In this document: positions 22,704 to 63,305 of the stretch, in pieces
Numbering within the stretch: position 1 is the stretch's first letter
Layout of the letters: each line of letters opens with the position of its first letter
Virus record (IMG/VR): IMGVR_UViG_3300042511_000879
Location: 62,001-126,000 of that record
DNA length: 64,000 nt
Strand: one strand, 5' to 3'
Position numbers and translations under genes: made by a program
The notes under the pieces: model-generated
Seen by the model: only the letters and a program-made list of their open reading frames with translations
The model's database searches: none
Told to the model about the DNA's origin: nothing

Positions 22704-23492
22704 CTATACCATAGAATCTCTTTTCGCTATAAGTTTTTGAAGTGATTTGTTAACACTTACTAACCATGTTTGTATTGAAGTAACATTAATTCGTTTCCAA
22801 CTATCGATTTGAGCTTGGATGCTTCTTTCTTGTTCTTGATAGTAGTATGCTTCGTCATTATTATAATTTTTAGCAGCATCTCTCTTTACAATTTCTTTCC
22901 AAGTCGGCCATACATAATCACTTTTTGCCTTAATCTCATCATCTGTTAATTTAGAGTTAACTTCAAGTTTTTCTTGTTCTGTTTTAATACGTTGCTTGTA
23001 ACTATTTATTTCTTTATTAATTTGTTCAAGCTTAGACATTTTCTTAATTTTGTCTGCATATTCTTTAGCAATTTCGGTAGCTCCAGTTTTTGGAATGCTG
23101 GTCTTAACAATATATCTATAGTGAAGTCTCTGAATGTTATGTCCTCCTGCATAAATCGCTTCAGTTTGGAAACTATAAGTGTTTTCTCCTCTTTGGATTT
23201 GAGCATCAATTTGAATATTTCCTTTAACGCTCTTACGCACGTTCATTGATAATAGTGAATCGGTTGGTAAGGTATACATTTCAATAGATTTAACCATATC
23301 GTATGTTAAATTGATTCTAGCATACTCTCTGTCGTATTTAGTGAACTCCTGTTTAAAGGTCTCAACAAACCATTTTTCTGTTGCAGCTAGCATTTCAACA
23401 ATTGTAGGTTCTAACGAATCTAAAATAACATTAACAATATTATCTTGATTTGACTCATTTAAGAATTGTCCGTATGTTTTAAATTTGTTCAT
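22704..23492 (-). CDS. Hypothetical protein with capsid-targeting-like leader
   Basis: N-terminus MNKFKTYGQFLNE|S resembles the T4 CTS MKTYQEFIAE. Confidence 0.6.
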   Translation of the reverse strand: MNKFKTYGQFLNESNQDNIVNVILDSLEPTIVEMLAATEKWFVETFKQEFTKYDREYARINLTYDMVKSIEMYTLPTDSLLSMNVRKSVKGNIQIDAQIQRGENTYSFQTEAIYAGGHNIQRLHYRYIVKTSIPKTGATEIAKEYADKIKKMSKLEQINKEINSYKQRIKTEQEKLEVNSKLTDDEIKAKSDYVWPTWKEIVKRDAAKNYNNDEAYYYQEQERSIQAQIDSWKRINVTSIQTWLVSVNKSLQKLIAKRDSMV

Positions 23493-23517
23493 GTTTTATA
23501 TATCTGTTTTAATTATA

Positions 23518-23590
23518 ATGTAAATATAAACAAAAAAACCCAGATCCGAAAATCTGGGTTGTTAATTTTATGTTAAAGTTATTAACAATT
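23518..23590 (-). promoter_or_regulatory. Class-1 promoter with embedded terminator hairpin (copy A)
   Basis: Minus strand TTTC(23551-23548)-N19-TATATTTA(23528-23521). TTTC lies in the loop of the AACCCAGAT/ATCTGGGTT hairpin (23537-23560), which is followed by a T run. Upstream TTGTTAATAAC/TTAACA boxes. Confidence 0.75.
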
Positions 23591-24803
23591 ATAGTTTCAA
23601 GAAAACCTTTCTAGTAGCTACGTCCATTCTTGTTATTTGAACGGTAATATTATCGTTCTTTGTAAGTGAATCAACCTTAACATTATCAGGAAGTTCGGAT
23701 ACGTGAAGTAATCCAACAATTCCATCTCCAACATCTACGAACACTCCATAATCTTTAACAGATTTTATTGTCCCTTTAACTTCAACTGGAAAACTTTTAT
23801 ACTTAGTAGCAACATCAGTCCATGGGTCAACAATTTCAACATGCTCTAATTGAGTCAACGTTATTTTATCGTTATTGATTATCTCTTTAATCTTAAATTC
23901 AATAACATCGCCTGGATTAATTTCTCTAGCCTTATGTTTTCTTGCCATTTCTGTGTTTAAATCATTTGCATGAATCATTCCAGTTAAACAATTATCAAAT
24001 TCAACAAATACTCCGTATTTTGTAGAACCTGTTACGTTACCTTCTTTGGTTTCTCCAGGGGTATTTCTAAGGTCTTCAATAGCATTTGGAATAAGCGCTT
24101 GAAGATATTTTCTATGGGATACTATTACTGTTCCTTTTTCCGGAGAGAAACTCATCGGTACTACGTACATTTGTGTGTTAATTACAGAACCAAAGTCTGC
24201 AAGTTTATTAATACCAGCTAGGGATCCTGGCATAAAGCAATCAACTCCTTGAACATTAACAAAGTAACCTCCACCTGGAATCATACTTGTTACAGTTCCC
24301 ATATATGCAGTATTTCCAGTTTCAGCAGATGCTAAAATTTCTCTTAATGTAGCAGCTTTGATACCAGCTTCAACAGAACCTAATACAAATCCTCTAGTAC
24401 TTTTACTTTTTTCTGCTGTAATTTCAACAGATATTTCAGTTCCAGGAATTAATTTTGCTCTTGAGATTGTAGATTCTTTTGACAATTGAACATACACCAT
24501 TTCACGATATCCAATATCGATAGATGCCCATTCCATGTCTACTGCATAAACTTTACCAGTATGCGTTTCTCCAGCATGTATTACATGTGTTTGATTATTT
24601 TCACTCCAGTGACTTTCCATTAAATTAAGAAGTTCTTGAGCATATGGTTCTCTAGAATAAACCTTAACACCATCTGGCGCTTTTACATGCTGGTTTATTT
24701 TTCTAAGAGTAGATGGGCAATCTGCAGAATATGCTTCCCAATCGAAGTTAGAGATATCGTTTGATAAATTCTCTGTTTGTTTAGTTAAAACGTCTTGTGA
24801 CAT
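23589..24803 (-). CDS. rpsA: Phage-encoded ribosomal protein bS1 homolog (four S1 domains)
   Basis: Bacteroidota-like N-terminal FDWEAY; S1 repeats YMGTVTSMIPGGGYFVNV, EGNVTGSTKYGVFVEF and KGTIKSVKDYGVFVDVGDGIVGLLHVSEL. Confidence 0.9.
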   Translation of the reverse strand: MSQDVLTKQTENLSNDISNFDWEAYSADCPSTLRKINQHVKAPDGVKVYSREPYAQELLNLMESHWSENNQTHVIHAGETHTGKVYAVDMEWASIDIGYREMVYVQLSKESTISRAKLIPGTEISVEITAEKSKSTRGFVLGSVEAGIKAATLREILASAETGNTAYMGTVTSMIPGGGYFVNVQGVDCFMPGSLAGINKLADFGSVINTQMYVVPMSFSPEKGTVIVSHRKYLQALIPNAIEDLRNTPGETKEGNVTGSTKYGVFVEFDNCLTGMIHANDLNTEMARKHKAREINPGDVIEFKIKEIINNDKITLTQLEHVEIVDPWTDVATKYKSFPVEVKGTIKSVKDYGVFVDVGDGIVGLLHVSELPDNVKVDSLTKNDNITVQITRMDVATRKVFLKL

Positions 24804-24846
24804 TGTTTTTATTTTTAAAAGGTTAATAAATTATATATTTGTTTTT

Positions 24847-27012: not shown

Positions 27013-27043
27013 ATTGTGTTAATTTATAGGATATTTATCCCAA

Positions 27044-28968: not shown

Positions 28969-28989
28969 GTATTATATATTATTTTTATT

Positions 28990-36548: not shown

Positions 36549-37031
36549 TTATTTTATATCTTCAGCGTCAGTAGCAACAGTAGCTTCTTTACTTTCATTA
36601 ATTTTCTTACTGAAAGCCTCGCTCATTTTATTTAAACATGCTTCGTATGCTTCAGATTCCATGTCTTTTTTCATTTCTTTTACACAATTAGATGCCATAC
36701 TAGCAACAAGTGATGCATTTTCAGCCATATATGTTTCTACAGTATGCTCATCATGCGCATCTTCTTCCCATGTTTTAGCTTCTGCAATAACTGCTTCATA
36801 ACACTCTTTTAATAATTCAGAAACAGGTTTTGTCTCTTCTTTAATTTCTTCAGCCTCATCTCCGATGTTTGCTTCGCCAGCTTCGTCTAGTCCTTGAACC
36901 TCTTCTGCTTCCTCTTCTGTTTCTTCTTCAGATTTAACATCAGGAGTTCCTTTAGCAACAACGTCTGCTTCTATTTCTTCGGCTCTGTCCATTTCTGAGA
37001 CAAATTCTTCGAATTTTTTAATACTTGCCAT
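36549..37031 (-). CDS. Acidic prohead-core-like protein with capsid-targeting-like leader
   Basis: MASIKKFEEFVSE|M leader, very Glu-rich, internal IAE/INE sites resembling T4 gp21 cleavage sites. Confidence 0.55.
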   Translation of the reverse strand: MASIKKFEEFVSEMDRAEEIEADVVAKGTPDVKSEEETEEEAEEVQGLDEAGEANIGDEAEEIKEETKPVSELLKECYEAVIAEAKTWEEDAHDEHTVETYMAENASLVASMASNCVKEMKKDMESEAYEACLNKMSEAFSKKINESKEATVATDAEDIK

Positions 37032-37057: not shown

Positions 37058-37459
37058 TTAATTTTGTGTTGGAGAATTAGAACTATTTGATTTTAAAGTT
37101 TTTATTAATGTAGCAATTGCTGCATCTTGTCTTTTCCATGCTGTAGTTTTTTCAACTTCTTCTCCTACTCTTGGTCTATCCGGATTGTTAGGGTCAAGTC
37201 CAACTTTTTGAAATCTACCTTTAGAGGATACACCAATCATAGAACTAGTGTCATTATCTTCTCCTTCTCTCCAATAAATTTGTACCGCATAATCAAATGT
37301 AATTCCGTCTGACCCATTTTTTTCAATAGTAGTTTCGCTAGTAACTTCTGCCCATGGGCATTTTTTAGCAACAGTATCGATTACATACTTTCTAAATTCT
37401 TCAGAAGTTTGAACTTGTTTTTCGTTTACAAATTGTTCAAATAGTTTAATATGTTTCAT
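37058..37459 (-). CDS. Hypothetical protein with capsid-targeting-like leader
   Basis: MKHIKLFEQFVNE|K leader; GATATATA motif at 37483-37490. Confidence 0.6.
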   Translation of the reverse strand: MKHIKLFEQFVNEKQVQTSEEFRKYVIDTVAKKCPWAEVTSETTIEKNGSDGITFDYAVQIYWREGEDNDTSSMIGVSSKGRFQKVGLDPNNPDRPRVGEEVEKTTAWKRQDAAIATLIKTLKSNSSNSPTQN

Positions 37460-37481
37460 TGTTTAGATTTTTATTTAGATT

Positions 37482-37799
37482 TTATATATCTTTATTTTTT
37501 AAATAACTGAAACTGTCTGATAAAAAGTAGTCTCGGAGTTTTAGATAGTGTATCAATATAAAGAATATTGAACCTCCTGGCATTACAACTATTGTTGCTA
37601 GACCTAATGTCTTAACCAGATTTATTAATTGTTTTGCAAACTTTTTACCCTCTTCGTCAGTTAAAGGTCTACGTTCTATAACGCATGTTGTTAAAAGTTT
37701 AGACATTGATTTTGTTTCAACGCCCTCTTTTTTAAGAGCCTCTAAAAATAGGTTAACATCCTTTTTTATCTTTTCTAACTCAATTGTTTTATTTTTCAC
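37482..37799 (-). CDS. Hypothetical protein with hydrophobic C-terminal segment
   Basis: ORF track; LGLATIVVMPGGSIFFILI is reminiscent of LETM1-like/membrane helices. Confidence 0.5.
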   Translation of the reverse strand: MKNKTIELEKIKKDVNLFLEALKKEGVETKSMSKLLTTCVIERRPLTDEEGKKFAKQLINLVKTLGLATIVVMPGGSIFFILIHYLKLRDYFLSDSFSYLKNKDI

Positions 37800-50906: not shown

Positions 50907-52880
50907 TTATTTAAAAGAAAGTTTCTCATCTCCTTTTTTATATGAAATCGTGTACGTTTTATTTCCTTTAACAATTTCTTTAGCTAAAATACCATCTGCT
51001 AATAAGTCTTCAACATACGTTTGAATTGCTCTTTTAAGAGGTCTAGCTCCATATTGAGCATCATACCCACGTTCTGCTAAAAATACTATCGCCGTTTTTG
51101 CAACTTTAATAATATATTCTTGTTCAACCATTCTTTCAATTACTTTTTGAATTTCGATTTCTGCAATTTTAGCAACATCTTCTTGTTTTAATCCATCAAA
51201 CAATACTATTTCATCCAATCTATTTAAGAATTCCGGAGCAAATTTGTTTTTAAGCTCTTTTCTGATAACAGTTTCCATTTCCATTTTGTGGGTGGCCGTA
51301 GAACTTGAACTTGAGAATCCGATTCCAGCCCCAAATTCTGCAACTCTTTTTGCTCCAACATTACTTGTCATAATAATGATAGTATTCGTAAAGTCAATAG
51401 TTCTACCAAGAGTATCTGTTAAACGACCCTCATCTAAAACCTGTAACAAGATATTGAAAATATCTGGGTGGGCCTTTTCAACTTCATCAAATAATACTAC
51501 TGAATATGGTTTACGTCGGACTTGTTCTGTTAACTGTCCACCATCCTCATGTCCTTCATATCCCGGAGGAGAACCAATAAGTCTACTTACGTTAAACTTT
51601 TCTTGGTATTCTGACATGTCGATTCTGATTAAAGAATCCTCGCTTCCGAAATAATATTCAGAAAGGGCTTTAACAGTTTCAGTTTTACCAACTCCAGTAG
51701 GTCCAATAAACATAAATGAACCGATAGGTTTTTTAGATGAACTTACTCCAGTTCGGCTTCTTTTAATAACTCTACATAGACCTTCAACCGCAGTATCTTG
51801 CCCGATAATCATCGCTTTTAATTCATTTTCCATATCAATAACAATTCTGCTCTCGTCATCGGTCATTCTTGTTACCGGAATTCCAGTAGATTCAGAAATT
51901 ACTTCAGCAATATCTTCATAAGTTACTGCCTTCTTATTTAGTCTAAGCGTCTCCTCCCATTCTTTGGTTCTTTTTGTTATCTCTTCTCGCTTACTAATTT
52001 CAAGGTCTCTTAAATTTCCGGCTTTTTCATAATTAGTAGCATCTGCTGCTTTTAACTTTGCGGCTTTTAATTTATCAGCTTCAATTTCAAGTTCTTTAAT
52101 AATTTCTGGAATTTTTACCTCTTTTAAATGTACTTTTGCTCCAGCCTCGTCCATAACATCAATTGCTTTGTCCGGTAATTCTCTTTGAGTAATATATCGG
52201 TCAGATAATACTACACAGGCTTTAATAGCGTCAGGAGTATATGATACTGAATGGAAGTCTTCGTAATTTGGTTTAATTCTGTCTAGAATTTCGATTGCAT
52301 CTTCAAGGGATGGTGGGTCTATAAAGATTTCTTGGAATCTTCTGGTAAGAGCTCCATCGGTTTCAATATTTTCACGATACTCATCGATTGTCGTAGCACC
52401 AATACATTGTACTTGTCCTCTTGCCAATGCCGGTTTTAAGATATTACTAGCATCTAATGAACCACTTACACCACCAGCGCCTACAATTGTGTGAATCTCA
52501 TCAATAAAGACAATAACATCTGGGTTCTCTTTAAGTTCATCAACAATGTTTTTCATTCGTTCCTCAAATTCTCCACGGTATTTTGTACCTGCAACTACGT
52601 TTGCAATATTAAGAGCAATTATACGTTTATTAAGAAGAGTCATTGCAACTTTCTTTTCAACAATACGTTGCGCAATTGCTTCAACTAGTGCAGTTTTACC
52701 AACCCCAGGATCCCCTAAAATAATTGGATTGTTTTTCTTTCTACGAGAAAGGATTTGACATATTCTATGGACCTCTTTTTCTCTTCCGATGATAGGGTCA
52801 AGTTTCCCATCTGCCGCTAGTTTAGTTAAGTCCTCTCCGAATTGGTCAATGAATGGAGTATTTGTTTTCTTACTGGTCAT
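50907..52880 (-). CDS. clpC: ClpC-type Hsp100 ATPase lacking the Clp N-terminal repeat domain
   Basis: Two AAA+ modules (GDPGVGKT and GPTGVGKT), UVR middle domain (NYEKAGNLRD), IGF loop (GAGIGFS); sequence begins directly at the D1 pre-helix. Confidence 0.92.
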   Translation of the reverse strand: MTSKKTNTPFIDQFGEDLTKLAADGKLDPIIGREKEVHRICQILSRRKKNNPIILGDPGVGKTALVEAIAQRIVEKKVAMTLLNKRIIALNIANVVAGTKYRGEFEERMKNIVDELKENPDVIVFIDEIHTIVGAGGVSGSLDASNILKPALARGQVQCIGATTIDEYRENIETDGALTRRFQEIFIDPPSLEDAIEILDRIKPNYEDFHSVSYTPDAIKACVVLSDRYITQRELPDKAIDVMDEAGAKVHLKEVKIPEIIKELEIEADKLKAAKLKAADATNYEKAGNLRDLEISKREEITKRTKEWEETLRLNKKAVTYEDIAEVISESTGIPVTRMTDDESRIVIDMENELKAMIIGQDTAVEGLCRVIKRSRTGVSSSKKPIGSFMFIGPTGVGKTETVKALSEYYFGSEDSLIRIDMSEYQEKFNVSRLIGSPPGYEGHEDGGQLTEQVRRKPYSVVLFDEVEKAHPDIFNILLQVLDEGRLTDTLGRTIDFTNTIIIMTSNVGAKRVAEFGAGIGFSSSSSTATHKMEMETVIRKELKNKFAPEFLNRLDEIVLFDGLKQEDVAKIAEIEIQKVIERMVEQEYIIKVAKTAIVFLAERGYDAQYGARPLKRAIQTYVEDLLADGILAKEIVKGNKTYTISYKKGDEKLSFK

Positions 52881-52931
52881 ATTGTGTATATTAATTTATT
52901 ATGGTAGTATTATAATATGTGCGGATCCCTG

Positions 52932-53144
52932 TTATGAATGGGTACCTTTTAAATTGTTAACCGAACGTTGAACACATTCAGGACATAGAGATGCAGTGGC
53001 TTCGGCTCCTACAACAGTCCAGTTCTCGCATGGTCCATCTTCAGGCCCATATTCTGCCCATTTACTCTTTTCCGGTTCTGAATTCTGACAAATCATCGAT
53101 ACGACCTTACGGCCTTTAACTTCAGTTTCTTTAGTTTTCCACAT
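52932..53144 (-). CDS. Small putative zinc-binding protein
   Basis: C...C...CPEC pattern; class-2 promoter at 53162-53188. Confidence 0.6.
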   Translation of the reverse strand: MWKTKETEVKGRKVVSMICQNSEPEKSKWAEYGPEDGPCENWTVVGAEATASLCPECVQRSVNNLKGTHS

Positions 53145-53189
53145 AGTATATTTATTTTAGATTTATATTGAGTTATTCCAATTTGTTTC

Positions 53190-54590
53190 AGGGTAAACTT
53201 AAAGAACCTTTGAGTTAAGTGAAAAATTTTTATTCTGTAATTCAGACCGGGTGCACCCTCCTATTGCGTGGGAAAATTTGGGTTTCAATCATCAAAAAAA
53301 TGAAATAATCTACCAGAACGATTGAACCGTTGAGGCCGTTTGAAATACATAAAGTCACATTGAGGGACTATTGGGCGGCCCTCCCCTAGCCCTATTAATA
53401 CCTATTGGCACATCGGTCGTCACAGTATACTGAGCACTCTATTGGAGGTATCAGAATGGGTGTGTCCTTCCTGTAGATACTCTATATAATAACGGATGTA
53501 CACTATAGGGGTTTTTAAATATCGTATACTATTAGATAGAATAGTTCTCTTTTTAATTAGAATCCCTACAGCACGCCCCCACCCCGCCCCTTTGGGACTC
53601 TATGGGATAGAGGTCAATTTTATTTTTTTCTATAGGATTTTTTTGAGAGCTTAGAGACTTGGAGTACCTCAGAGAGGTGAGAGAGCGGTGAGTCACCCTA
53701 CCTTTCACCTTTGAGACTTGGATACTTCTTATATCCTCATAGGACCTATTAGTTTCAACGGGTTACTCTTTATTTCACAGTACACTTCGTGCCTGACACA
53801 GTACCCTCAGGTCAATCTGAGCCAACCATCGGTAATTGGTAACGGTCTTATTGGTTAATTATAGGTTCTTTATGTTTCTAGTAACGGTGATATCCATTCT
53901 ATCGGTCTCAATTGGTCTTTGGTCACCTTCCGGACCTGGGTAATTTTTTGGGTAGGGCAACATTGAAGTACTCTGAGGGTGGGATGGACCATTGGCTACC
54001 ATCGGAGGACCATCAGAGGACCATTGACGCTGGGAGGGTCTCTCAACATTGAGGTATTGATATTCCCGGACGGGGATAATTCGTCCACTTCTATGAAACA
54101 CATTTATCAAAGGTCTATATTAGTTAGGAAGTCTAGAGCTTTGATCCTACAGTCCTTTGAGAACCTCTAGACCTGGCTTTTATAAGGATCCACCCTGGGT
54201 GCTGACCGCTCCGTAGACCTGCCCAACCGGTATTGAGGGTCAATGCACACGTGCCCTAGAGTCCAGTGGTGACTGGAAGAGTCCTGCTCTACCCTAGTTA
54301 CCCTGTGTCTGTAGTGAACTATTAGTATTATTGTCATTCTTGTGCAGAGCACACCTGCATTGTGCAGGCATTGACCTGCATTGCCTATTGCAACAGTTGA
54401 TCAGTGCACTACAGGTAGATAGGTCTATTGCCCTTACAACAATATTGAGCCTATTGAGCATATTGAACCTTTGAGGACATTGAGTAATCATTGAATTGCA
54501 TTGATTATTGCTACAGGGCATTGAGCCGGGCATTGCTACAGGACATTGATCCTGGACATTGCGCCGGGCATTGATCTGGGGACATTGATC
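53190..54590. other. Non-coding, GC-richer, repeat- and hairpin-rich island (left)
   Basis: About 1.4 kb without a credible gene in an otherwise fully packed genome; many (C/T)ATTG and GGACCAT motifs, hairpins and C runs. Confidence 0.7.
54350..54590 (+). repeat. Degenerate short-period (C/T)ATTG array
   Basis: About 19 ATTG copies between 54359 and 54587, mostly spaced 9-14 nt; the later copies read GG(A/G)CATTG. Confidence 0.85.
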
Positions 54591-54593
54591 CTC

Positions 54594-55298
54594 CTATTTG
54601 AATCTGGGAGTATTGATCCTGGGAGAGTTGAAACGGAGATTAGGCGCGGAGATACTCTTCTGTTTATAAGCTGGGCCTAGGTCCCTTTCTGGTGCCTTAT
54701 AAGGGGACATTGTATTTGTCTTGTCAAAACTTGTTATAGGGAATGGGGCTGGTTCCGATACCTTATTATTAGATGGGTCATATTGTTTTTGGCTAGTACG
54801 TTTTATAGGTGCACTATCTGGTTGTTTATTAACATTTGCGTTAGGGTCTCCATTATCGTGCCCGAAGTCACTATCTATAGAACCTCTATCTCCACCTGTA
54901 TTGTTTGCTATCATATTACCCATTTGTGCATCTATAAGAGATTCTTTAAACCCCTTAGAACGAGGTTGAGGTGTTTGAGCTATATCGGTTTCCTTAGTTG
55001 GTGTTTGGGCCTGATCGCTTGACGATAGTGTTTGTTTATCGTATTGGACATTTTGATTGGCTGGATTATTTTGCTTTCGGGCAGTATCTGAGGTTGCCTT
55101 ATTACCCTGTTGGGTTTGAGCATTAACATCACTTCCAGCCTTATTTATACCCGTTGCATCTATAGGAGATATTGAACTGTCTCCTGGGGATGGATTTAAA
55201 CTACTAGGAACTGATGAGGTATCTGTCTTATTAGAGGTTTGAGTCTTAGCAGCATTTACCCTATCGCTTATACTAATTTGAGTTAGACCTATCTTCAT
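54594..55298 (-). CDS. Low-complexity, probably disordered S/T/Q/P/D-rich protein
   Basis: 705-nt open frame with few hydrophobic residues. Confidence 0.6.
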   Translation of the reverse strand: MKIGLTQISISDRVNAAKTQTSNKTDTSSVPSSLNPSPGDSSISPIDATGINKAGSDVNAQTQQGNKATSDTARKQNNPANQNVQYDKQTLSSSDQAQTPTKETDIAQTPQPRSKGFKESLIDAQMGNMIANNTGGDRGSIDSDFGHDNGDPNANVNKQPDSAPIKRTSQKQYDPSNNKVSEPAPFPITSFDKTNTMSPYKAPERDLGPAYKQKSISAPNLRFNSPRINTPRFK

Positions 55299-55413
55299 AT
55301 AGTTTTTCTAGTTCCATTTGGAGCTTTCTGATTTTTAGGAAGTTATTTGGATCCGTCATTTTAGTTTCCAATATCTCCTTGTTAAGTTGAGCAATACGTA
55401 ATCTGTTTTCCAT
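55273..55413 (-). CDS. 46-aa hypothetical protein (below the ORF-track cut-off)
   Basis: Hand translation MENRLRIAQLNKEILETKMTDPNNFLKIRKLQMELEKLYEDRSNSN*; AATATATA motif at 55439-55446. Confidence 0.5.
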   Translation of the reverse strand: MENRLRIAQLNKEILETKMTDPNNFLKIRKLQMELEKLYEDRSNSN

Positions 55414-55444
55414 GATGATATGTGTTTAGGTTATACTCTATATA

Positions 55445-55876
55445 TTATGCTTCCATTGGAACTTGGTAAGGAACGTATGCTCTATCAGCCCAAGTTTTAG
55501 CTCCTACTGCGCTATATTGTGCTTGGTTATAAAGGTTTGTATTTCTATATAGTTGATTAATCGTACCTACTGTTAGGTTACCCATTATTAACTCATCCAT
55601 TAAGACTATTTTGTTCCCTTTACGGGCGAATAATGTTAGGTAATAATCTCCACCATCTGGGCAGAATTCAACTGTTTGTAAGGCACTTTTATTATAACCT
55701 GTGATGATTGATTCTGGGTAGGTCATGAAATATTCGTTTTCATAGTCTTTAGCATCTACTATGGTCATCCAACCCGCTTTACATTTTGTTATGAAACGGA
55801 ATTTACCTTTTGTGTTTGGAAAGGCTCCTAATACGTTTACTGTTCGTACGTCTGTTGTGTTTACTAAATTTGTCAT
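55445..55876 (-). CDS. Hypothetical protein under a class-1 promoter
   Basis: ORF track; promoter at 55901-55931. Confidence 0.7.
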   Translation of the reverse strand: MTNLVNTTDVRTVNVLGAFPNTKGKFRFITKCKAGWMTIVDAKDYENEYFMTYPESIITGYNKSALQTVEFCPDGGDYYLTLFARKGNKIVLMDELIMGNLTVGTINQLYRNTNLYNQAQYSAVGAKTWADRAYVPYQVPMEA

Positions 55877-55887
55877 AATGGTGTGTT

Positions 55888-56032
55888 TTAATTAGATATG
55901 TAAATATAATCATTATTTGTGATTCCGGAAACTGTTTGCGCAAGTATTTTCAGAAAGTTATTAACAATTGTTGTTCATAAGTTTTTTGAGAAACTGTTTC
56001 GGGATTCATATAAATTGATTATATTTACATAT
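55888..56032. promoter_or_regulatory. Divergent pair of class-1 promoters
   Basis: Minus: TTTC(55931-55928)-N19-TATATTTA(55908-55901). Plus: TTTC(55997-56000)-N19-TATATTTA(56020-56027). Confidence 0.85.
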
Positions 56033-56039
56033 GAAAAAT

Positions 56040-56165
56040 AGCAAAATGACATAACGGGTTCGTATAGCACAAAGAATCGAGAGATTCGACACGGGCGGTC
56101 CTTTAAACCAGGGGAGGAAGAGTAGACTCCAGCTCGTCTTCTATTTAGAGGTCTGAAACGCCACT
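56040..56165 (+). ncRNA. Candidate small structured RNA
   Basis: Lies directly downstream of a class-1 promoter, has no usable ORF (ATG...TAA after 7 codons), is GC-richer, and contains a GAATC-GAGA-GATTC GNRA hairpin plus nested stems. Confidence 0.45.
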
Positions 56166-56167
56166 AG

Positions 56168-56245
56168 AAACTTTAACAAAAAATTAACATAAAATAGTTT
56201 CGGTTCTTGAAACTATTGATTATATTTACATATCTAATTAAAACA
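56168..56245 (+). promoter_or_regulatory. Class-1 promoter
   Basis: TTAACA repeats, TTTC(56198-56201)-N19-TATATTTA(56221-56228)CATATCTAATT. Confidence 0.85.
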
Positions 56246-56252
56246 AAGAACT

Positions 56253-56447
56253 ATGAAAATCACCATCAACATCCTTCCAGCCTTAGGTTCCCTAATCGCG
56301 TTCGGGCTTACGTATTCCTTATTAACTGGAACTCTTCAAAAATTCATACCATTCCATGGTACCCTTAATGAAATGACAACTACAATATGTCTATTTTGGA
56401 TAGGTACTCTTTTATTGTTCTGCTCATTCGAAAAATTTAACAAATAA
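56253..56447 (+). CDS. Small membrane protein (two hydrophobic helices)
   Basis: ORF track; follows a class-1 promoter. Confidence 0.6.
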   Translation: MKITINILPALGSLIAFGLTYSLLTGTLQKFIPFHGTLNEMTTTICLFWIGTLLLFCSFEKFNK

Positions 56448-56496
56448 TACTGAAACAAAACCAATTTTTAATATATAAATCTAAAATCTTATAACT

Positions 56497-57633
56497 ATGG
56501 CAATTGCAACTCTTTCTAACACCTTAATTGAACAACGTAAAGTAGCTACATTGGAGGCTCAAAACCTTCGTAAAGTAGTACCATTCCGCGATATCAATTT
56601 AATAGATGGTGAATCTATCGAATATAATGGTCAAAAAATTAACCTTACACCTACTGCATTCAAAAATCTTTTAGGTCTATTAGGTATGAGTAACCAATTT
56701 GCTCAGAAATTCGAATCTCTCTTTACTAAAGAGGCTAAATCTCAGTTTATCAACACTATGAAAAATGCAATGGCATCTAATAGTGGTAAACTTTCTGAAG
56801 TAACCCTTGTACTTAACCCTATTAGTAAATCGGTAGTGGCTATCACCAAGAAAGATCAATTTGGTATATCTAACCAACAATTCATGGGAGTTGCTGAGAA
56901 TATCATAGATAACCACGGTATGAACGTAACAAACTGGTCAGTAGACCCAGGAACTGGTATTGTAACTATTAATGCATTTAATCCTAAAGCGAATTTCGCA
57001 GTTCAAGGTTTATCTGATGAGGTATTTACTGGAGGTGTTACTTTCAAAAATTCACCTAAAGATGGTTTCCAAGTTCTTCCTTATGTTAATCGTCAGTTTT
57101 GTACTAATGGTTTAACTACTGCGTTTGCTGAGGAGTCTTATACTCTTCAATCTTTGGACCAAGGTTCTATGGAAAAGTTCTTTGAAAATATGAACGAATT
57201 ACGTAAGAATAACTTTGCTCCTACTGGTTTTGCTGACCGTGTAAGAATGGCTCATAACACTCCTGCTTCCCTAAGCGAATTACAGTTTGCACATAACCTT
57301 ATTGAACCATATGCTGGAGAACGTTCTAACACTTGGATTCCTTATGCTGAAAACATGAATGCATTCTATAATGCTGGTTTTGATAACATATCTGGTCAAC
57401 AGATGAAACATGCTAAATCAAATACTTCTGTATGGGATGTTATCAATGGTGTTACTCACTTTGCAACCCATGGTGCTGGTATTATCGATACAGACATGCA
57501 AGACTATAATGCATCTGAATTAATGGTAAAATCTGGTAACCTATTCGGTAAAAAAGCTTTTGACCACGAAAATACTATGCCAGACCTTTTTAGAGGTAGA
57601 GACTTAGTACGTAGTGGTTCATTATTAAACTAA
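56497..57633 (+). CDS. DUF932-like phage/plasmid protein
   Basis: FKNSPKDG...RQFCTNGL and TSVWDVINGVTHFATH match the DUF932 NSxDG...RxxCxNG and WxxxNxxT motifs. Confidence 0.65.
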   Translation: MAIATLSNTLIEQRKVATLEAQNLRKVVPFRDINLIDGESIEYNGQKINLTPTAFKNLLGLLGMSNQFAQKFESLFTKEAKSQFINTMKNAMASNSGKLSEVTLVLNPISKSVVAITKKDQFGISNQQFMGVAENIIDNHGMNVTNWSVDPGTGIVTINAFNPKANFAVQGLSDEVFTGGVTFKNSPKDGFQVLPYVNRQFCTNGLTTAFAEESYTLQSLDQGSMEKFFENMNELRKNNFAPTGFADRVRMAHNTPASLSELQFAHNLIEPYAGERSNTWIPYAENMNAFYNAGFDNISGQQMKHAKSNTSVWDVINGVTHFATHGAGIIDTDMQDYNASELMVKSGNLFGKKAFDHENTMPDLFRGRDLVRSGSLLN

Positions 57634-57660
57634 TATTTGGTAGTCTGCATATCGGAATTA

Positions 57661-57691
57661 AAGGGACCATTCTCACATAGGTCCCTTTTTT
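57661..57691 (+). terminator. Intrinsic terminator
   Basis: AAGGGACC...GGTCCCTT stem followed by a T run, after the DUF932-like gene. Confidence 0.8.
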
Positions 57692-57699
57692 ATGTGAAA

Positions 57700-57780
57700 T
57701 TGTTAATAACTTTTTGAAAATAATTTGAAAAACTGTTTCCAGTGTCGTGGATATTGATTATATTTACATATCTAATTTTA
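57700..57780 (+). promoter_or_regulatory. Class-1 promoter
   Basis: AATTGTTAATAAC box, TTTC(57736-57739)-N19-TATATTTA(57759-57766). Confidence 0.85.
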
Positions 57781-57793
57781 ACAAAGAAACACC

Positions 57794-58267
57794 ATGATGA
57801 CTCAAGCACAAATCACCGAACAAAACGAAATCGAATCTAAATTGGCTCATAACTACGAGTTGACTCACAGAGAGAATATGATTTTACTATATTCTGATTT
57901 TCATAAGGATGCCTACGGTTTCCGTCCTCGTACTATTAATGTATATGCCTTAACCACTGAGGAACTGGAGGCTGATTTTGACCGTTTCGAAGCGACATGT
58001 AAGATTAATAGACACGAAGAGGAAATGGCCGAAATGGAGGCTGATATCGCGTTCCGTGCCCTTATAACTAATACAATCGCTATAGGTGCAAACGATGAGG
58101 TTACTGCATTACGTTGGATCGCTGAAGGTGCTGTAGAAGATTATGGTTATGACTATGAGCATTTCCTTTGGAACCAAGGTATAGCATACTCTGCCTACGG
58201 TAAGGAGTTGGCTAAGAGATTTGCTCCTATCTGGGGTAAAGCTCTTCAAACCCAGAAAGTTGCATAA
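57794..58267 (+). CDS. Hypothetical phage protein
   Basis: YSDFHKDAYGFRPR motif; has its own class-1 promoter. Confidence 0.7.
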   Translation: MMTQAQITEQNEIESKLAHNYELTHRENMILLYSDFHKDAYGFRPRTINVYALTTEELEADFDRFEATCKINRHEEEMAEMEADIAFRALITNTIAIGANDEVTALRWIAEGAVEDYGYDYEHFLWNQGIAYSAYGKELAKRFAPIWGKALQTQKVA

Positions 58268-58269
58268 AC

Positions 58270-58340
58270 TTTAACAAACTTTTAACATTTAAAAGTTTCC
58301 GGTTTCCACAATATTGATTATATTTACATATCTAATTAAA
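58270..58340 (+). promoter_or_regulatory. Class-1 promoter
   Basis: TTAACA repeats, TTTC(58296-58299)-N19-TATATTTA(58319-58326). Confidence 0.85.
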
Positions 58341-58350
58341 ACACCACATT

Positions 58351-59460
58351 ATGAACAGACAATCTTACTTAATCCGCACACAACCTAACGAATTCATCGT
58401 TTTAGTAAACACGAAAAACCCAATTGACACCCTCTTAATCGAGCCTGGTCATTCAAAATATACTTGGGTCCAAAACCAAGACGCTAACCGTATTATCAAC
58501 ATCACCGAAACTGGTAGATGGACAAGTAATAAGGACTATAATAACGATTACGGAACCTCAACATCTAAACAACCTCAATCGGTTAACCCTTGTGCCCCTG
58601 TTGAGGTTACACTTACCAAATTAGACGACTTAAATATCGATGATTCCCTATTTACCAGCCTTCCAACTGGAACTATCTTTGACCAGTTTTGTTCAACTGA
58701 AGGTGGATTCTTACCTGGAACTAATATAATGGCTGCTGGAGCTCCTGGTGTCGGTAAAACAACAGTGCTATTAGAACTTCTATCTAAGCTATCTGCTCAA
58801 GGTAAACGGGTCTTATTTATATCTGCCGAAATGAACCAGATAGATATGGCACGTTACCTTAAAAGATTCCCACACTGGGGACAATTACCTATCCTTTTCC
58901 TATCTGACTACACTGAGTCTTGTCCAAAAGGAGTAATTGAAGGTGTACTTAACCAAGGATGGGACGTTGTCTTAACCGATTCATATACCGAAGTTAACGA
59001 TACCATCAAGGAGGAATGTAACATGACCAGAGGTAAAACCGAAAAATGGTTCCTAGACCTAATGACTCAGCATAATAAAGGTGGTAACAAGACGAAAACA
59101 TATACAACCTTCGTAACTATCCTGCAATTATCTAAAGGTGGTAATTTCGTTGGTTCTAATAAACTGAAACACATGACAACTGCGATGATGATGTTGGACT
59201 GGGACGGAAACGAAAACTCAGGTAGAAGGTTCATGGAGTTCTCTAAAAACAGAACAGGTCAAGTCGGTAAAAAACTATATTTCGAATTATCAGATGGTGT
59301 TTCCTTCGACGAAGGCCGATATACAAGAGACCTATTTAACGACGAGGTCCTAGCTGAGGAAAGAAAAGCCCTAACAGGAGAAAGTAATGCCTTCGACAAA
59401 CTATTCGGTTTCGACAAGGATGCCGTACCTGAGGAATTAAAAACCCTGGTAGAACTATAA
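58351..59460 (+). CDS. RadA/Sms-like RecA-fold ATPase without Zn finger or Lon-like domain
   Basis: GGFLPG...GAPGVGKTT, VLFISAEM, LTDS, GSNKLKHMTTAMM and KNRTG (compare RadA KNRFG). Confidence 0.75.
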   Translation: MNRQSYLIRTQPNEFIVLVNTKNPIDTLLIEPGHSKYTWVQNQDANRIINITETGRWTSNKDYNNDYGTSTSKQPQSVNPCAPVEVTLTKLDDLNIDDSLFTSLPTGTIFDQFCSTEGGFLPGTNIMAAGAPGVGKTTVLLELLSKLSAQGKRVLFISAEMNQIDMARYLKRFPHWGQLPILFLSDYTESCPKGVIEGVLNQGWDVVLTDSYTEVNDTIKEECNMTRGKTEKWFLDLMTQHNKGGNKTKTYTTFVTILQLSKGGNFVGSNKLKHMTTAMMMLDWDGNENSGRRFMEFSKNRTGQVGKKLYFELSDGVSFDEGRYTRDLFNDEVLAEERKALTGESNAFDKLFGFDKDAVPEELKTLVEL

Positions 59461-60120
59461 CAAATATACGGCTGGCAGCCGAAACTGCCTTAATTAGATA
59501 GAGATTTCCGGGAGTGTGGTGTTCCCGGAATTCTTGTATTCCGAGGCTGGCAGTTTCAAAATACCCGCTGGGGCAAGGGACGATTACCAATGGCCGGGCA
59601 AGGCAGAATTGTTTCACCCGCTGCGGCACTAGGAACTGGTAGAAATCTGGTGCTGGGCATGGTTTCGGTTGGTTTTTGTGGTGCCCAGGAGTGTGGAGAG
59701 GGTCCGGAGTGTCTCGGAGGGTGACCCAACTCGACGAGAGGTTTAAGGCCCAATGAGGAACATTGAGGAACATGAAGGGGCCCTTAGAGGAACATTGAGG
59801 TGACATTGCGAGCTTGGAGTGCCTGCTATATATCATTTTAATAAAAAAGGTAGAACTGGGGTACCTGGTTGGCTGGAGATTGAAAGGGGTTAGGGAGGGT
59901 TGGTAGGACCATAAGGGGCTTAGAATCTGGACAGGTATGGGGGTCAGGAGGGGTAGAAGGGTTCTTTATAGGGGGTTTATATCCTTATACTGTTATTCTT
60001 ATATCTGTATATCTATATAGAGGTTTAGATGTCTTAGATGTTTTTGTTTTAGGTTTATTAGATTTATTTCTTTTTTATTGTGGGGGAGGGGTGGATTCCG
60101 GACGTGCCGGACCTAAATAA
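59461..60120. other. Non-coding, GC-richer, hairpin-rich island (right) with G runs and an AT-rich tract
   Basis: Multiple perfect stems in 59469-59730, GAGGAACATTGAGG repeats, G runs at 59886-59975 and 60082-60094, and a T-rich tract at 59976-60080. Confidence 0.7.
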
Positions 60121-60144: not shown

Positions 60145-60150
60145 GTGTGG

Positions 60151-60396
60151 TTATTTTTGTATGTCTATAATATCGTATTTGTGGAAACCCTTTTCTATGT
60201 TCCGGATGGCAGCATCGATATCAGTATACTTGCCTTTCCACTGGGTTTCAAAATTACCTTTTACTGTAATTCCTTTAAATCCGTCTGGCGATGCACCTTG
60301 GATTGTTGTAGTGTCAAATGGTTTATCATAGATAATTTCAATTTGGTATTTACTGGATTCATTTAAGAACGCTTCAAAGGGTTTGATATGTTTCAT
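60151..60396 (-). CDS. Small protein with capsid-targeting-like leader
   Basis: MKHIKPFEAFLNE|S. Confidence 0.65.
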   Translation of the reverse strand: MKHIKPFEAFLNESSKYQIEIIYDKPFDTTTIQGASPDGFKGITVKGNFETQWKGKYTDIDAAIRNIEKGFHKYDIIDIQK

Positions 60397-60800
60397 AATT
60401 TTAAGTAGTTTACTTTGAGTTTGGTTTCTCCTAGGGCCCAGGCCTTAGTGAGTCTGTGGTGGCCGTCGTAGATTACAGGTCCTTCTGGGTATTCGATAAC
60501 ATTTATTGTTTTGACTTTACCCTCTCTAAGTATCATCTCTGTAACCTTACTAGATTGTATATTCCTTTGAGTGATATGTATATCCTTTGGGTTAATGGTT
60601 TTAGGTTTGGCCTTGTCCTCGTTCTCCTCCCATGTTTGGACTATTTCGCTCCAGGGACGGTTACTGATTTGGAAGATACCATCTATTCGTTTTGCATCAT
60701 CGAATATAGAACCCTTTGGAAGTCCTTCTACCTTTTCGATAGCGGCTTCCTGTTTTTTGGATTCATTTAGGAATTGTTCGAATAGTTTTACAAGTTTCAT
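60393..60800 (-). CDS. ParB/Srx-fold protein with capsid-targeting-like leader
   Basis: MKLVKLFEQFLNE|S leader; INPKDIHITQ...VIYDGHHRLTKAWALG is a ParB-N signature. Confidence 0.75.
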   Translation of the reverse strand: MKLVKLFEQFLNESKKQEAAIEKVEGLPKGSIFDDAKRIDGIFQISNRPWSEIVQTWEENEDKAKPKTINPKDIHITQRNIQSSKVTEMILREGKVKTINVIEYPEGPVIYDGHHRLTKAWALGETKLKVNYLKL

Positions 60801-60803
60801 AGA

Positions 60804-61388
60804 TTAATAGTATGATGGTTCTCCTCTTGTTGCGAATAATGCGGTGATGTATGGTTTACCATCATTAGTGATAATTGCATATCCTCTATCATGTAACCAA
60901 GTTCTAAATTCATTGGCAGTTGAGTTAAAATAGGATTTTGAACTATTCCCAATCTTAAGATCGATAATCGGTTCTCCATCTTCTAGTTTTCCTGCCTTTC
61001 CGCCTTTAAGTGGAATATGGATTAAGGGTCTATTAGGTGTTGTATTACTCTTTTCTGGAGTTAATTTAACGTCCCAATCAAATGATTTTTGTAGGTCCTT
61101 CATTAGGGCACTGAATACTTTTTGTTTTTCAATGTCTTTAATATCAACTACATCATATCCTGCAGCACGGATTCCGTCTTCAAATTCAGCTCTCATTTCT
61201 GGAGTAAAATCAAGTACCTCTAGGTCTTGGTTCCATGCCCATCTAGAGATGAATTTATCAACATCTTGATTTATTGTTACGTATGGCAATCTATCTGTTT
61301 TATCAGTGGTTGCCTTCTTAATCATTCCTTTGATACTATAACTTTTAGCCTCGTTTACGAATTGTTCGAATAGTTTTATTTTTTTCAT
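60804..61388 (-). CDS. Hypothetical protein with capsid-targeting-like leader
   Basis: MKKIKLFEQFVNE|A. Confidence 0.65.
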   Translation of the reverse strand: MKKIKLFEQFVNEAKSYSIKGMIKKATTDKTDRLPYVTINQDVDKFISRWAWNQDLEVLDFTPEMRAEFEDGIRAAGYDVVDIKDIEKQKVFSALMKDLQKSFDWDVKLTPEKSNTTPNRPLIHIPLKGGKAGKLEDGEPIIDLKIGNSSKSYFNSTANEFRTWLHDRGYAIITNDGKPYITALFATRGEPSYY

Positions 61389-61469
61389 GATGTGGTTTTA
61401 TTTTCTTTTATTTATTTGATTTTTAGGTAGAGTTCTATGATTGAACTGTGTGTTAGGTATATTTGCAAA

Positions 61470-61509
61470 TGACGAGAATCAAGTGTCATATTGTGCTTGA
61501 TTCTCGTCA
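61470..61509. repeat. 14-bp perfect inverted repeat (possible terminator or processing stem)
   Basis: TGACGAGAATCAAG (61470-61483) / CTTGATTCTCGTCA (61496-61509). Confidence 0.85.
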
Positions 61510-61571
61510 CTATTTCTTTTATGTATCTTTGAGGTACATATCCAGTGTCAACATACGCTTTCCATTCCTTA

Positions 61572-62747
61572 TTAGTCATCTAAATTATGGTCTATTGTAG
61601 GGTCTTTGATGGTTCTCTCTACAAAATATAGAGATGATGTTGATACCTGTGCTGGTACAAAATCTGTTGTGATATTTATTGTATTTTTACGGAAGACGAT
61701 GTAAACTAGTCCAGCATGGATTTGGTTTACAGCCTTCTGCATGTCTACTTCTAAGTCTTTTGGATTTCGGACATATTTTAATCGCTTTAATTCTGATAAA
61801 ACGTAGGTTGCTGTTTGGTCAGTTTTTGCTACGTGAAATGTAATGGTATCTCCTGTTATTAGAGCAGGGTCTAATAAGTCGATACTCAATTCGATTGGCT
61901 TTGAATTTGGTCCTCTTAGAATAACATTAGTATATCCTTGTAGACTATTTTCAACTTTAGCGGCTTGTTCGTAGAATGCATTAATGTTTTTGAAATCGGT
62001 TTTATTACATTCACCTGACATAATGGTTCCTTTTCTTCCCATTAGGTAATTTGCTGCTGCCGTCATTTCAGCAGAGAAGTATTTGCTTATATCAAATTTA
62101 GGTTTTCCAGCAGAATATCCTGTTAGTTTATCGATTCTTGATAGCGTATCACTAATCTCTCTCCAAAATTCAAAGTTACTAACTTTTGATTTTACACCAG
62201 CTCTAATCGCTGAATTTCCATTACTATAATCTTTAACTTCAAAAGCATCTTTGTTGTTAATAATAACATCATAGCTCTCTCCACCACCTTGAATTACTGC
62301 ACCTTTAATTAACCATGCAATAAGGGCTTCTCCTTTTCCAAGTCCTGTTGGCTTTTGGTCGAATAATTTACCAAGTACTGAATTTCTGTTTGAATACATC
62401 GAAACGGTTAAGTCCTTTGGTGCAATTGCTGAATATAAATATTTTGCTAGCTCTACTGACTCTTTTGGATTCAGTGATGCAAAATAATTTAGAATGAAAG
62501 TTGTTGGAATTCCATTTGGATAGTTTTTTGCAAACTCTTTATAATCTACAATTTTTCCTTGTGAGTTAATTGCATTAATTAGAGCCATATTTCCATGAAG
62601 AGAACCTGGATTATCTACCTCTCCTTGCATACTATCTGCATTAACCTTTTCATTTAATGTTAAATCAAAAGAATTCACTATTGCAGAATCTATTGATGTG
62701 TTTAATGCCGCTTCAAAACGGGCTTTAAAATCTCCTACTGTACTCAT
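61572..62747 (-). CDS. Hypothetical protein with a possible PD-(D/E)xK nuclease domain
   Basis: GLGKGEALIAWL...SYDV...AFEVK resembles the D...(E)xK catalytic pattern. Confidence 0.45.
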   Translation of the reverse strand: MSTVGDFKARFEAALNTSIDSAIVNSFDLTLNEKVNADSMQGEVDNPGSLHGNMALINAINSQGKIVDYKEFAKNYPNGIPTTFILNYFASLNPKESVELAKYLYSAIAPKDLTVSMYSNRNSVLGKLFDQKPTGLGKGEALIAWLIKGAVIQGGGESYDVIINNKDAFEVKDYSNGNSAIRAGVKSKVSNFEFWREISDTLSRIDKLTGYSAGKPKFDISKYFSAEMTAAANYLMGRKGTIMSGECNKTDFKNINAFYEQAAKVENSLQGYTNVILRGPNSKPIELSIDLLDPALITGDTITFHVAKTDQTATYVLSELKRLKYVRNPKDLEVDMQKAVNQIHAGLVYIVFRKNTINITTDFVPAQVSTSSLYFVERTIKDPTIDHNLDD

Positions 62748-62753
62748 AATTTT

Positions 62754-63305
62754 CTAGTGTTTAGCAAGATGTGTCTTGATCGTTGTACCAAGTTCACTCT
62801 CTAGTTGTTTTATTAGTTTTATATTGTTTCTATCGTCGTCGAAGAACGTGATATCCGTGTAACCCTGGTCAATAAACCAGCGCATTGCATCCTGTTTTCT
62901 TTGTTGTATGTTTCCGGTAAGTCCGTGAACTGGGTCATTAACTGCCCAAATTAGTTTTTTATCGATATGGAATCCTAAGTGAAAGCGGAACCATTCATAT
63001 ATCATCGATTGATTATCTCTAGCAGTAATAACTCCAATCGCAACTCCATTCTTGTAGTTTGTTGTAAGTACCTTAAAGTATTTATCGATTAATCGCCCAG
63101 CTTTCATAATCTCTAAGGATCTGAATTGGTCAAAGTTAACCAAGTGGTTTTGACCCTTCTCGTAAGAGTTAAACTCTTCTGGAGTCAGTTCAAAGGATTT
63201 TCCGGTCTTGGTATCAGTGACTACGATTTTAGCGGGTGTAATTGCTATTGTATCATCAATATCAAAAATAAGGATTTTATCAGTAGTATACTTTTCGTTT
63301 AACAT
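62754..63305 (-). CDS. HAD-superfamily phosphatase
   Basis: ILIFDIDDT (motif I), VITAR (motif II) and FFDDD (motif IV). Confidence 0.8.
   Translation of the reverse strand: MLNEKYTTDKILIFDIDDTIAITPAKIVVTDTKTGKSFELTPEEFNSYEKGQNHLVNFDQFRSLEIMKAGRLIDKYFKVLTTNYKNGVAIGVITARDNQSMIYEWFRFHLGFHIDKKLIWAVNDPVHGLTGNIQQRKQDAMRWFIDQGYTDITFFDDDRNNIKLIKQLESELGTTIKTHLAKH

Follow-up and report, generated by a model that had tools for sequence, protein, structure and literature searches.

Introduction

In bacteriophage T4, the internal proteins (IPs) IPII and IPIII start with MKTYQEFIAE/A and IPI starts with MKTFKEFTSTTT (here and below, a slash marks the end of a leader or a cut site). The first 10 residues of IPIII are enough for packaging, and in this capsid-targeting sequence (CTS) residues 4 and 7 are the ones that matter for targeting, while residues 8 and 10 matter for processing (PMC9026906). 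The principle of loading proteins into the head by a short leader is thus a known one, from the T4 CTS and from the polymorphic internal proteins of the T-even phages (PMC3012670, PMC9026906). Here we consider a 64,000-nucleotide stretch of DNA (the window), which comprises bases 62001–126000 of the single 236,071-bp IMG/VR viral contig IMGVR_UViG_3300042511_000879 and belongs to an uncultured 236-kb freshwater T4-like phage. Six open reading frames (ORFs) of the window begin with a similar leader of 13 residues.

An initial annotation had described this leader as a modular, T4 CTS-like head-loading tag that is cut after (I/L)xE and that delivers a panel of injected effectors. The first part of this proposal, with the cut placed after (I/L/V)xE, is supported by the encoded protease, by the match to the T4 positions, by a repeat in the scaffold, by tags in the head module and by the swapping of leaders on one enzyme, while the part about injected effectors is not. 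On the evidence given below, the 13-residue leader is probably a propeptide for capsid targeting, of the same type as the T4 CTS, with which the tagged proteins would be loaded by scaffold mimicry, trimmed by the protease and released together with the DNA.

The Tag Family

The six N-termini noted in the initial annotation are all present in the window, on the minus strand, and the positions by which it had designated them refer to the stop-codon ends of the ORFs, which have the lower numbers. They are part of a much larger set. A genome-wide motif scan, run as the nine-residue core [KQN]x[FY][EG][EQDA][FY][ILV]xE, gave 23 six-frame matches in the 236-kb genome, 21–22 of which are located at ORF N-termini; in residue-shuffled proteomes the core was found 0.04 times on average and at most twice. 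The tag family is real and lies far beyond chance. With looser variants included (among them MKKVKLFEQYIAE, MKHVKLFEKFVET, MKHMQLFNEFLGE, MNFDQFLNE and MKTFKEFTIDE), about 30 of the 304 ORFs, that is, 10% of the genes, carry the tag M-K-x-[IV]-K-L-[FY]-E-x-[FY]-[ILV]-x-E. These genes are found mostly in cassettes at genome 24–25, 35–47, 98–99, 122–123, 141–151 and 205–207 kb.

The bodies that follow the tag are 64–913 residues long and are indeed unrelated to each other, as had been claimed: they belong to different Pfam families or to none, and no BLASTP similarity was found between them except for one pair (E = 0.002). The shorter LNE variants that had been added to the family, at window positions 21359 (MNNLNE), 61572 (LNE at residues 30–32) and 62754 (MLNE), are on the other hand at chance level. 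The motif [LIVF]NE occurs 0.16 times per 100 residues proteome-wide, so that ca 15 chance matches are expected in the first 30 residues of the 304 ORFs. Since the number of N-terminal matches left after removal of the true tags is also ca 15, these variants have to be rejected.

The tag is not confined to one genome. A degenerate DNA pattern of it matches more than 118 IMG/VR stretches, with 274 tagged ORFs of a median length of 148 residues, and the matching contigs are fragments of genomes of ca 230–300 kb. Strict tags number 3–19 per related contig, where nearly all of them lie on the same strand (with one exception), and the reversed-pattern control gives 0–1 per contig. From 216 instances in this clade, the consensus is M-K-[HK]-[IV]-K-L-F-E-[QE]-F-[IVL]-N-E. 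Phe or Tyr is found at positions 7 and 10 in 216/216 instances, but these two positions are fixed by the search pattern. K2 and L6, which the pattern leaves unconstrained, are conserved to 96% each, and Asn, also unconstrained, occupies P2 in 75% of the instances. Position 11 is [ILVM], position 13 is Glu, and in most instances A, K, S or G is found at P1'. The conservation ends abruptly after Glu13.

At the nucleotide level, the pairwise identity in the 39-nt tag is 0.80 at codon positions 1 and 2 and 0.62 at position 3, and 33% of the identical-residue pairs are encoded by different codons. The flanks are at the background level, with an identity of 0.37 over the 30 nt before the tag and of 0.31 after it. 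As the codons vary, the flanks are not conserved and the bodies are unrelated, selection acts on the tag peptide.

The tag's most conserved positions, F7-x-x-F10-[ILV]11-x-E13, have the same spacing as Y4-x-x-F7-I8-x-E10 of T4, and near-copies of T4 leaders are found among the tags, namely MKKVKLFEQYIAE/A, MKIIKTFEEFTSS and MKTFKEFTIDE. The strict tag DNA pattern occurs 0 times in T4, 0–1 times in Lak-A1 and 4–5 times in the uncultured phage LR756500, the peptide being too short for a homology statistic.

A 258-residue protein (genome 37762–38538, minus strand; L005:13762–14538) has an internal copy, ..KKFKSFEQFINE/SVQ, at residues ~170–184 after an acidic linker, and a cut there would release a fragment of ca 75 residues. 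Two ORFs outside the window (genome 42885–44756 and 217695–218204) end in a tag-like manner, with ..IMTFEQFINK.. and ..IKMFEEFKNI, and both sit in a tagged-gene cassette beside a tagged gene. These ends suggest scars of recombination between tags. A literature search for the tag and for the sister-lineage leader motifs discussed below returned no relevant paper, the sole match being an unrelated vaccine-design paper.

Protease, Scaffold and Head Module

The phage encodes a gp21-like prohead protease of the S77 family, with both the catalytic His and the catalytic Ser in place. It forms the N-terminal part of a 640-residue protease–scaffold fusion (genome 5510–7432), located in a T4-type head module at genome 2.6–9.5 kb, outside the window. 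The match to Peptidase_S77 (PF03420) has 46 bits, above the curated threshold, and that to phrog_207, annotated as head maturation protease, has E = 1.5e-40 over 467 residues. When the ORF is aligned to the structure of T4 gp21 (5JBL), the His falls in ELDHP and the Ser in ISSRAAG, of which SSRAAG is invariant in 14 clade sequences. The protein is encoded in all 12 matching contigs of at least 130 kb.

The junction between the protease and the scaffold reads R-V-N-E followed by A or S, invariantly in 14/14 clade members, and carries the same [ILV]-N-E followed by A or S as the end of the tag. The fusion has 33 [LIV]xE sites in total, which is three times the genome rate. Its N-terminus, MTNNLLILE9, parallels the MNEPQLLIE9 of T4 gp21, a site that in T4 fits the gp21 logo (PMC9026906). 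A complex prediction for the protease domain (residues 1–161) with the 81-residue tagged protein of the window gave a score of 0.00, with a predicted local distance difference test (pLDDT) value of ~31 for the partner, and counts neither way.

The link between the tag and the scaffold is seen with the four-position core [FY]xx[FY][ILV]xE. This core occurs 41 times in the proteome, 27 times in N-terminal tags, five times in the scaffold part of the fusion (NKYSKYLSE, KNYTNYLAE, IKYTEYLRE, TEYAEYVAE and TFFKFISE) and nine times scattered. Composition-preserving shuffles of the fusion contain on average 0.077 copies, and never as many as 4 in 20,000 trials. All 13 relatives (13/13) have 3–6 copies each. 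Since the five copies far exceed the shuffles and copies recur in the 13 relatives, the tag is a copy of the unit that is repeated in the scaffold. The link is visible only with the four-position core, as defined by T4 genetics; a ten-position position-specific scoring matrix (PSSM) of the tag did not rank the scaffold repeats highly.

A sister T4-like lineage provides a second, independent tie of leaders to the scaffold. In 61 IMG/VR stretches of that lineage (leaders in L186–L246), many unrelated ORFs carry the leader ..EFKRMQKLAGI.. followed by [IL]xE. The peptide FKRMQKLAGI is at the same time the extreme C-terminus of an acidic protein of 330–471 residues that is encoded between the gp21 and gp23 homologues, in the position of the gp22 scaffold (L194:1332–2747, plus strand; L240:9768–11183; L207:10530–11765). 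The cargo leaders of the sister lineage thus copy the C-terminus of the scaffold.

The head module also contains tagged genes. Between the portal (genome 7875–9464) and the protease lies a gene for a protein of 116 residues (genome 7503–7853), which starts with MKIIKTFEEFTSS, almost the leader of T4 IPI. This is the position of gp67 and gp68 in T4, and the gene located here is tagged in 13/13 relatives read, e.g., with MKRVKLFEEFIKE, MKIIKTFEDFITE and MKTYIKTFEQFIFE. After the major capsid protein comes a gene for a charged, coiled-coil-like protein of 369 residues (genome 2606–3715) with the tag variant ..FENWYTSILEE, and more distant relatives have the canonical tag here.

The major capsid protein (genome 3819–5351) matches Pfam Gp23 with E = 1.9e-42. 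Its residues 7–50 align by BLASTP with residues 6–64 of T4 gp23, which indicates a T4-like propeptide, and I-N-E7 and L-Y-E44 are invariant candidate cut sites. Another option considered was that MANLINE/AEI is the counterpart of FLTE65/AEIGG in T4 gp23. This was rejected, as the alignment places residues 7–50 inside the T4 propeptide.

In addition to the fusion, the genome has an S77 paralogue of 132 residues that is 35% identical to the protease domain (genome 156286–156684, minus strand, outside the window; L010:4286–4684). Both catalytic residues are lost in it, the His being replaced by Tyr (GELGYPES) and SSR by RPR. Two near-identical contigs have the paralogue as well, and LR756500 has a weak match below the cut-off. 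It may be an inactive pseudoprotease that acts as a core component or regulator.

An Acb1-Like Enzyme with Exchangeable Leaders

One of the tagged bodies is encoded at genome 204974–205516. It matches Acb1 (PF23474) with 31.3 bits against a cut-off of 27, and its two HxT motifs, H61-x-T63 and H136-x-T138, do not vary among 67 sequences. In the AlphaFold2 model, the tag residues 1–15 have pLDDT values below 50 and the body above 90, such that the leader is detached from the body. Foldseek assigns a confident 2H fold to this model, with a probability of 1.00 to 9Q2Y and 7T26/7T27. The body is thus predicted to be a 2H phosphodiesterase, closest to phage phosphodiesterases and Acb1. Compared to Acb1 itself (T4 gp57B; Acb1 of phage FBB1, PDB 7T26/7T27), the Pfam threshold, the two HxT motifs and the 2H fold are shared, but the identity is only 21–22% and the TM-scores are 0.42–0.58. 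We know of no report of Acb1 being packaged in a virion.

Of the 120 homologues of this enzyme, 53 carry the leader of the present phage. Other homologues have MIKLLDLLKEE, ..EFKRMQKLAGIITEE, ..KDYxxWLFES or ..KIKxxMGLNEN in its place, and one has no leader. Most of the alternative leaders end in φ-x-E directly before the conserved body. The comparison indicates that a single conserved enzyme body has had its leader exchanged from lineage to lineage.

In T4, gp57B starts with MMEFKDFSTG and its gene adjoins ipI (L129:13953–14411 and L129:13592–13879 of the T4 record, both minus strand). The tagged aquatic enzymes raise the question of whether this N-terminus is a vestigial CTS.

The other tagged bodies include an ATP-grasp enzyme and an Lcl_C-domain protein. 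The former (genome 206018–206962) weakly matches ribosomal protein S6 glutamyl transferase in PHROG, and an amidoligase (PF12224) is encoded at window 21359–22651 on the minus strand. The two are possible peptide- or protein-modifying enzymes. Most of the tagged bodies, however, have no recognisable family. With only one of them being anti-defence-like, namely the Acb1-like 2H phosphodiesterase, the panel of injected effectors is not supported. That the tagged proteins are effectors is a hypothesis, for which the Acb1-like enzyme is the best example.

Tagged Genes of the Window

All six tagged ORFs of the window are encoded on the minus strand. The 262-residue ORF at 22704–23492 has a divergent leader, MNKFKTYGQFLNE/S (coded at 23454–23492), with a PSSM score of 12.0 compared to 22–34 for canonical ones. 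The late-promoter-like motif ATATATAA is found upstream of it, and no match was obtained for the protein in Pfam, PHROG or the ESM Atlas. The 160-residue ORF at 36549–37031 starts with MASIKKFEEFVSE/M (36993–37031; PSSM 24.5) and has an acidic body with a pI of 4.1. Next to it, at 37058–37459, is an ORF of 133 residues with the canonical leader MKHIKLFEQFVNE/K (37421–37459), whose PSSM score of 34.3 is the top one, and GATATATAA is located ~30 nt upstream. Neither of these two proteins has a Pfam or PHROG match.

The remaining three ORFs form a tagged cassette. The 194-residue ORF at 60804–61388 has the leader MKKIKLFEQFVNE/A (61350–61388), and is followed by one of 135 residues at 60393–60800 with MKLVKLFEQFLNE/S (60762–60800; PSSM 33.5), for which there are weak PHROG matches only. 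The last gene is the 81-residue ORF at 60151–60396, with MKHIKPFEAFLNE/S (60358–60396; PSSM 22.6). The 194-residue protein has 31 homologues of 67–96% identity, all of them tagged, with M1, L6, E8, F10, N12 and E13 invariant. Its AlphaFold2 model has a moderate mean pLDDT of 68.6, with residues 1–14 below 50, and gave no convincing fold match in the AFDB clusters or the PDB. A feature search of the ESM Atlas with this protein and the 262-residue one returned no usable match.

The genes for the protease, portal, baseplate and fibres are preceded, at a distance of ~30 nt, by the motif (G)ATATATAA. Genome-wide, this motif favours the coding strand, with 63 occurrences compared to 21 on the other, and it precedes eight tagged genes or cassette heads, in the window at 37461–37495 and 23494–23510. 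The motif is probably the late promoter of the clade, analogous to that of T4, which for comparison is TATAAATA.

Genome and Host

The contig has a GC content of 0.34, a CheckV completeness of 77% and ca 95% of its genes on the minus strand. Two contigs of 234 kb (G012 and G016) are near-identical to it and have the same genes with rotated coordinates. The rotation points to a genome that is circularly permuted or terminally redundant and that may be nearly complete despite the CheckV value.

Among GenBank phages, the major capsid protein is closest to that of the uncultured 462-kb phage LR756500 (52% identity), followed by the Prevotella Lak megaphages at 38%, and a megablast search of 6.3 kb of the window against the same phages gave no match. 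Reads matching the genome come from lake and freshwater metagenomes, among them lake-water samples in which the phage is fully covered, and the ClpB-like gene of the phage is closest to genes of Bacteroidota (Chitinophagales, Saprospiraceae; 55–58% identity). On account of these two observations, the host is probably a freshwater member of the Bacteroidota.

In the window, the minus strand further encodes the ClpB-like double AAA+ chaperone (50907–52880), a full DnaJ (42247–43080), an RNA-binding protein with two S1 domains (23589–24803) and a UvdE UV endonuclease (37789–38706). Positions 52900–59900 form an island of higher GC content (0.39 compared to 0.32). The only plus-strand genes of the window sit in this island, at 56497–59460, and include a KaiC/RecA-like ATPase, while a part of ca 1.4 kb (53150–54590) has no convincing ORF. 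Conceivably, the island is a mobile element that has been inserted here. No RNA genes were detected in the window with Rfam or in a tRNA scan.

Proposed Mechanism and Alternatives

We propose that the leader forms a short amphipathic helix, whose aromatic residues at positions 7 and 10 would imitate the [FY]xx[FY] repeat of the scaffold, that is, of the C-terminal part of the 640-residue fusion. By virtue of this imitation, the tagged proteins would be built into the prohead together with the scaffold core. The S77 serine protease, which is of the gp21 type, would then cut after the Glu of [ILV]-x-E, at a site of the same kind as those at which the protease is separated from the scaffold and the scaffold is dismantled. 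The mature cargo would thereby be freed inside the head and would leave it with the DNA at infection. Scaffold binding, cleavage, presence in the virion and ejection of the cargo are steps that we infer from sequence.

It is important to point out that a number of observations weigh against this mechanism. The variants MKTIKLFEEFKEA and MKKVKLFEEYQMS have no Glu at position 13, and such proteins might be targeted yet uncut, or not targeted at all. Internal [LIV]xE sites are not depleted in the tagged bodies (1.39 compared to 1.51 per 100 residues). Many of the bodies are acidic or neutral, unlike the basic IPs of T4, and ca 30 cargo species far exceed the number in T4. The late-promoter-like motif is directly upstream of only 8 of the ~28 tagged genes. 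The LINE motif of the major capsid protein is not a homologue of the gp23 cut site, and this protein therefore gives no clean evidence on the specificity of the protease. Finally, the search of the phage collection with the major capsid protein found no cultured relative, the best match being uncultured and 52% identical.

One alternative accepts the loading step but not the injection. The tagged proteins would then mostly be accessory components of the core or scaffold, or DNA-condensing fillers, that are degraded or retained in the head. Consistent with this, the best-conserved tagged proteins are those of the head module, i.e., of the gene between the portal and the protease and of the gene after the major capsid protein, the latter product having the charged, coiled-coil-like character mentioned above; most bodies lack an enzyme family, and gp67 and gp68 of T4 are core proteins that are processed to peptides (T4 record annotation). 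However, the bodies include several enzymes for which a structural role is not apparent (the Acb1-like 2H phosphodiesterase, the ATP-grasp enzyme and the Lcl_C protein), and the tagged genes lie in variable cassettes outside the head module, as the T-even IP loci do (PMC3012670). We consider this alternative unlikely, albeit not negligible. It is quite improbable that the leader serves another destination or partner, for instance in recognition by the ClpB-like or DnaJ chaperones, both of which the phage does encode, as an oligomerisation handle, or as a degradation or regulatory signal. This would leave unexplained why the motif is the scaffold repeat unit, why it ends in the R-V-N-E/(A or S) site of the head-protease junction, why it is present on the gene between the portal and the protease, and why it matches the mutationally defined positions of the T4 CTS. 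The fact that the leader of the sister lineage equals the C-terminus of the scaffold also speaks against it.

As the tag sits exactly at gene starts, and as two upstream ORFs end in what look like remnants of tags, which suggests recombination at tags, the conserved element could also be thought of as a nucleic-acid one, either a translation-initiation or regulatory RNA site or the translated border of a recombination cassette. This is contradicted by the lower conservation of third codon positions (0.62 compared to 0.80), by the different codons used for 33% of the identical residues, by the lack of conservation (0.37) in the preceding 30 nt, to which a ribosome or regulator would bind, and by the internal recurrence of the peptide motif in the scaffold. 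Such recombination probably results from the presence of the tag and is not its function, and we regard the nucleic-acid explanation as very improbable. The tandem clusters (genome 24–25, 38–47, 122–123, 147–151 and 205–207 kb) and the one body pair with a weak BLASTP match (E = 0.002) would fit a single fast-evolving paralogous family, in which the leader is the only part that can still be aligned. With bodies of 64–913 residues, distinct Pfam families and folds (2H phosphodiesterase, ATP-grasp, Lcl_C), a 2H phosphodiesterase body that occurs with five other leaders or none, and a conservation that stops exactly at Glu13, there is hardly any room left for this explanation.

If the capsid-targeting mechanism is correct, the capsid cargo of an uncultured clade of 230–300 kb freshwater phages would be readable from sequence, amounting to ca 30 proteins in each genome and, clade-wide, to hundreds of different bodies, most of them without a known fold. 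An Acb1-like cyclic-nucleotide phosphodiesterase may then arrive pre-made with the DNA, before phage gene expression, which would change the expected timing of counter-defence against immunity of the cyclic oligonucleotide-based antiphage signalling system (CBASS) type. The scaffold repeat of the present phage and the scaffold C-terminus of the sister lineage point to cargo that mimics the scaffold, and this provides a testable mechanism for the old question of how the 10-residue CTS of T4 finds the prohead core. The leader is furthermore a candidate for a modular tag with which foreign proteins could be brought into large capsids.

One can speculate that the imitation of the scaffold by the leader is a general, sequence-readable code for cargo loading in T4-like phages of aquatic bacteria, with one leader per lineage: KLFEQFxNE here, and EFKRMQKLAGI, LLDLLKE, KDYxxWLFE and others elsewhere. 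Entire packaged proteomes, including pre-loaded counter-defence enzymes such as the Acb1-like phosphodiesterases, would then be predictable from the sequence by itself. This generalisation is tentative, and we would at present rate its chances as somewhat below even.

Comparison with Known Systems

Encapsulin cargo-loading peptides and the C-terminal coat-binding helices of tailed-phage scaffolds are also short modular peptides that suffice to bring unrelated cargo into an HK97-fold shell. The leader of the sister lineage, being equal to a scaffold C-terminal peptide, resembles them in this respect. Encapsulin peptides are usually C-terminal, bind the shell and are not removed, whereas the leader considered here is N-terminal and ends in a protease site.

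In the giant phages phiKZ, 201phi2-1 and SPN3US, a large capsid receives many head-internal and ejection proteins by way of their propeptides, and these proteins are trimmed after Glu by a gp21-related prohead protease of the gp175/gp245 type (PMC5694885, PMC7411985, PMC10052503). These phages are of a different lineage, the major capsid protein here matching Pfam Gp23. Their cleavage reportedly takes place at a short x-x-E after long and dissimilar propeptides, with no shared tag of 13 residues.

The closest system is the CTS of T4. In both, proteins that are otherwise unrelated share an N-terminal leader of 10–13 residues, in which aromatic residues at i and i+3 precede [ILV]-x-E; the genome also encodes a gp21-type S77 protease, and the genes are located in variable cassettes (for the T-even IP loci, see PMC3012670). 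Some of the leaders here, with ..YIAE/A and KTF(E/K)EFTS(S/T), are nearly identical to those of T4. There are also clear differences. The present genome has ca 30 tagged genes compared to 3–4 in T4, and its leader has three more residues, a fixed M-K-x-[IV]-K-L at the start and a preference for Asn at P2. Protease and scaffold form one fusion protein, and the leader core is demonstrably the repeat unit of this scaffold. The cargo extends beyond small basic proteins to enzymes and acidic proteins, the host is probably one of the Bacteroidota, and the phages most closely related to it, LR756500 and Lak, are huge, the system being known here from sequence alone. What is new here is the scale, with ca 10% of the genes throughout a whole uncultured clade, the leader core that is demonstrably identical to the scaffold repeat, the swapping of leaders on one enzyme, and a candidate pre-packaged Acb1-like enzyme.

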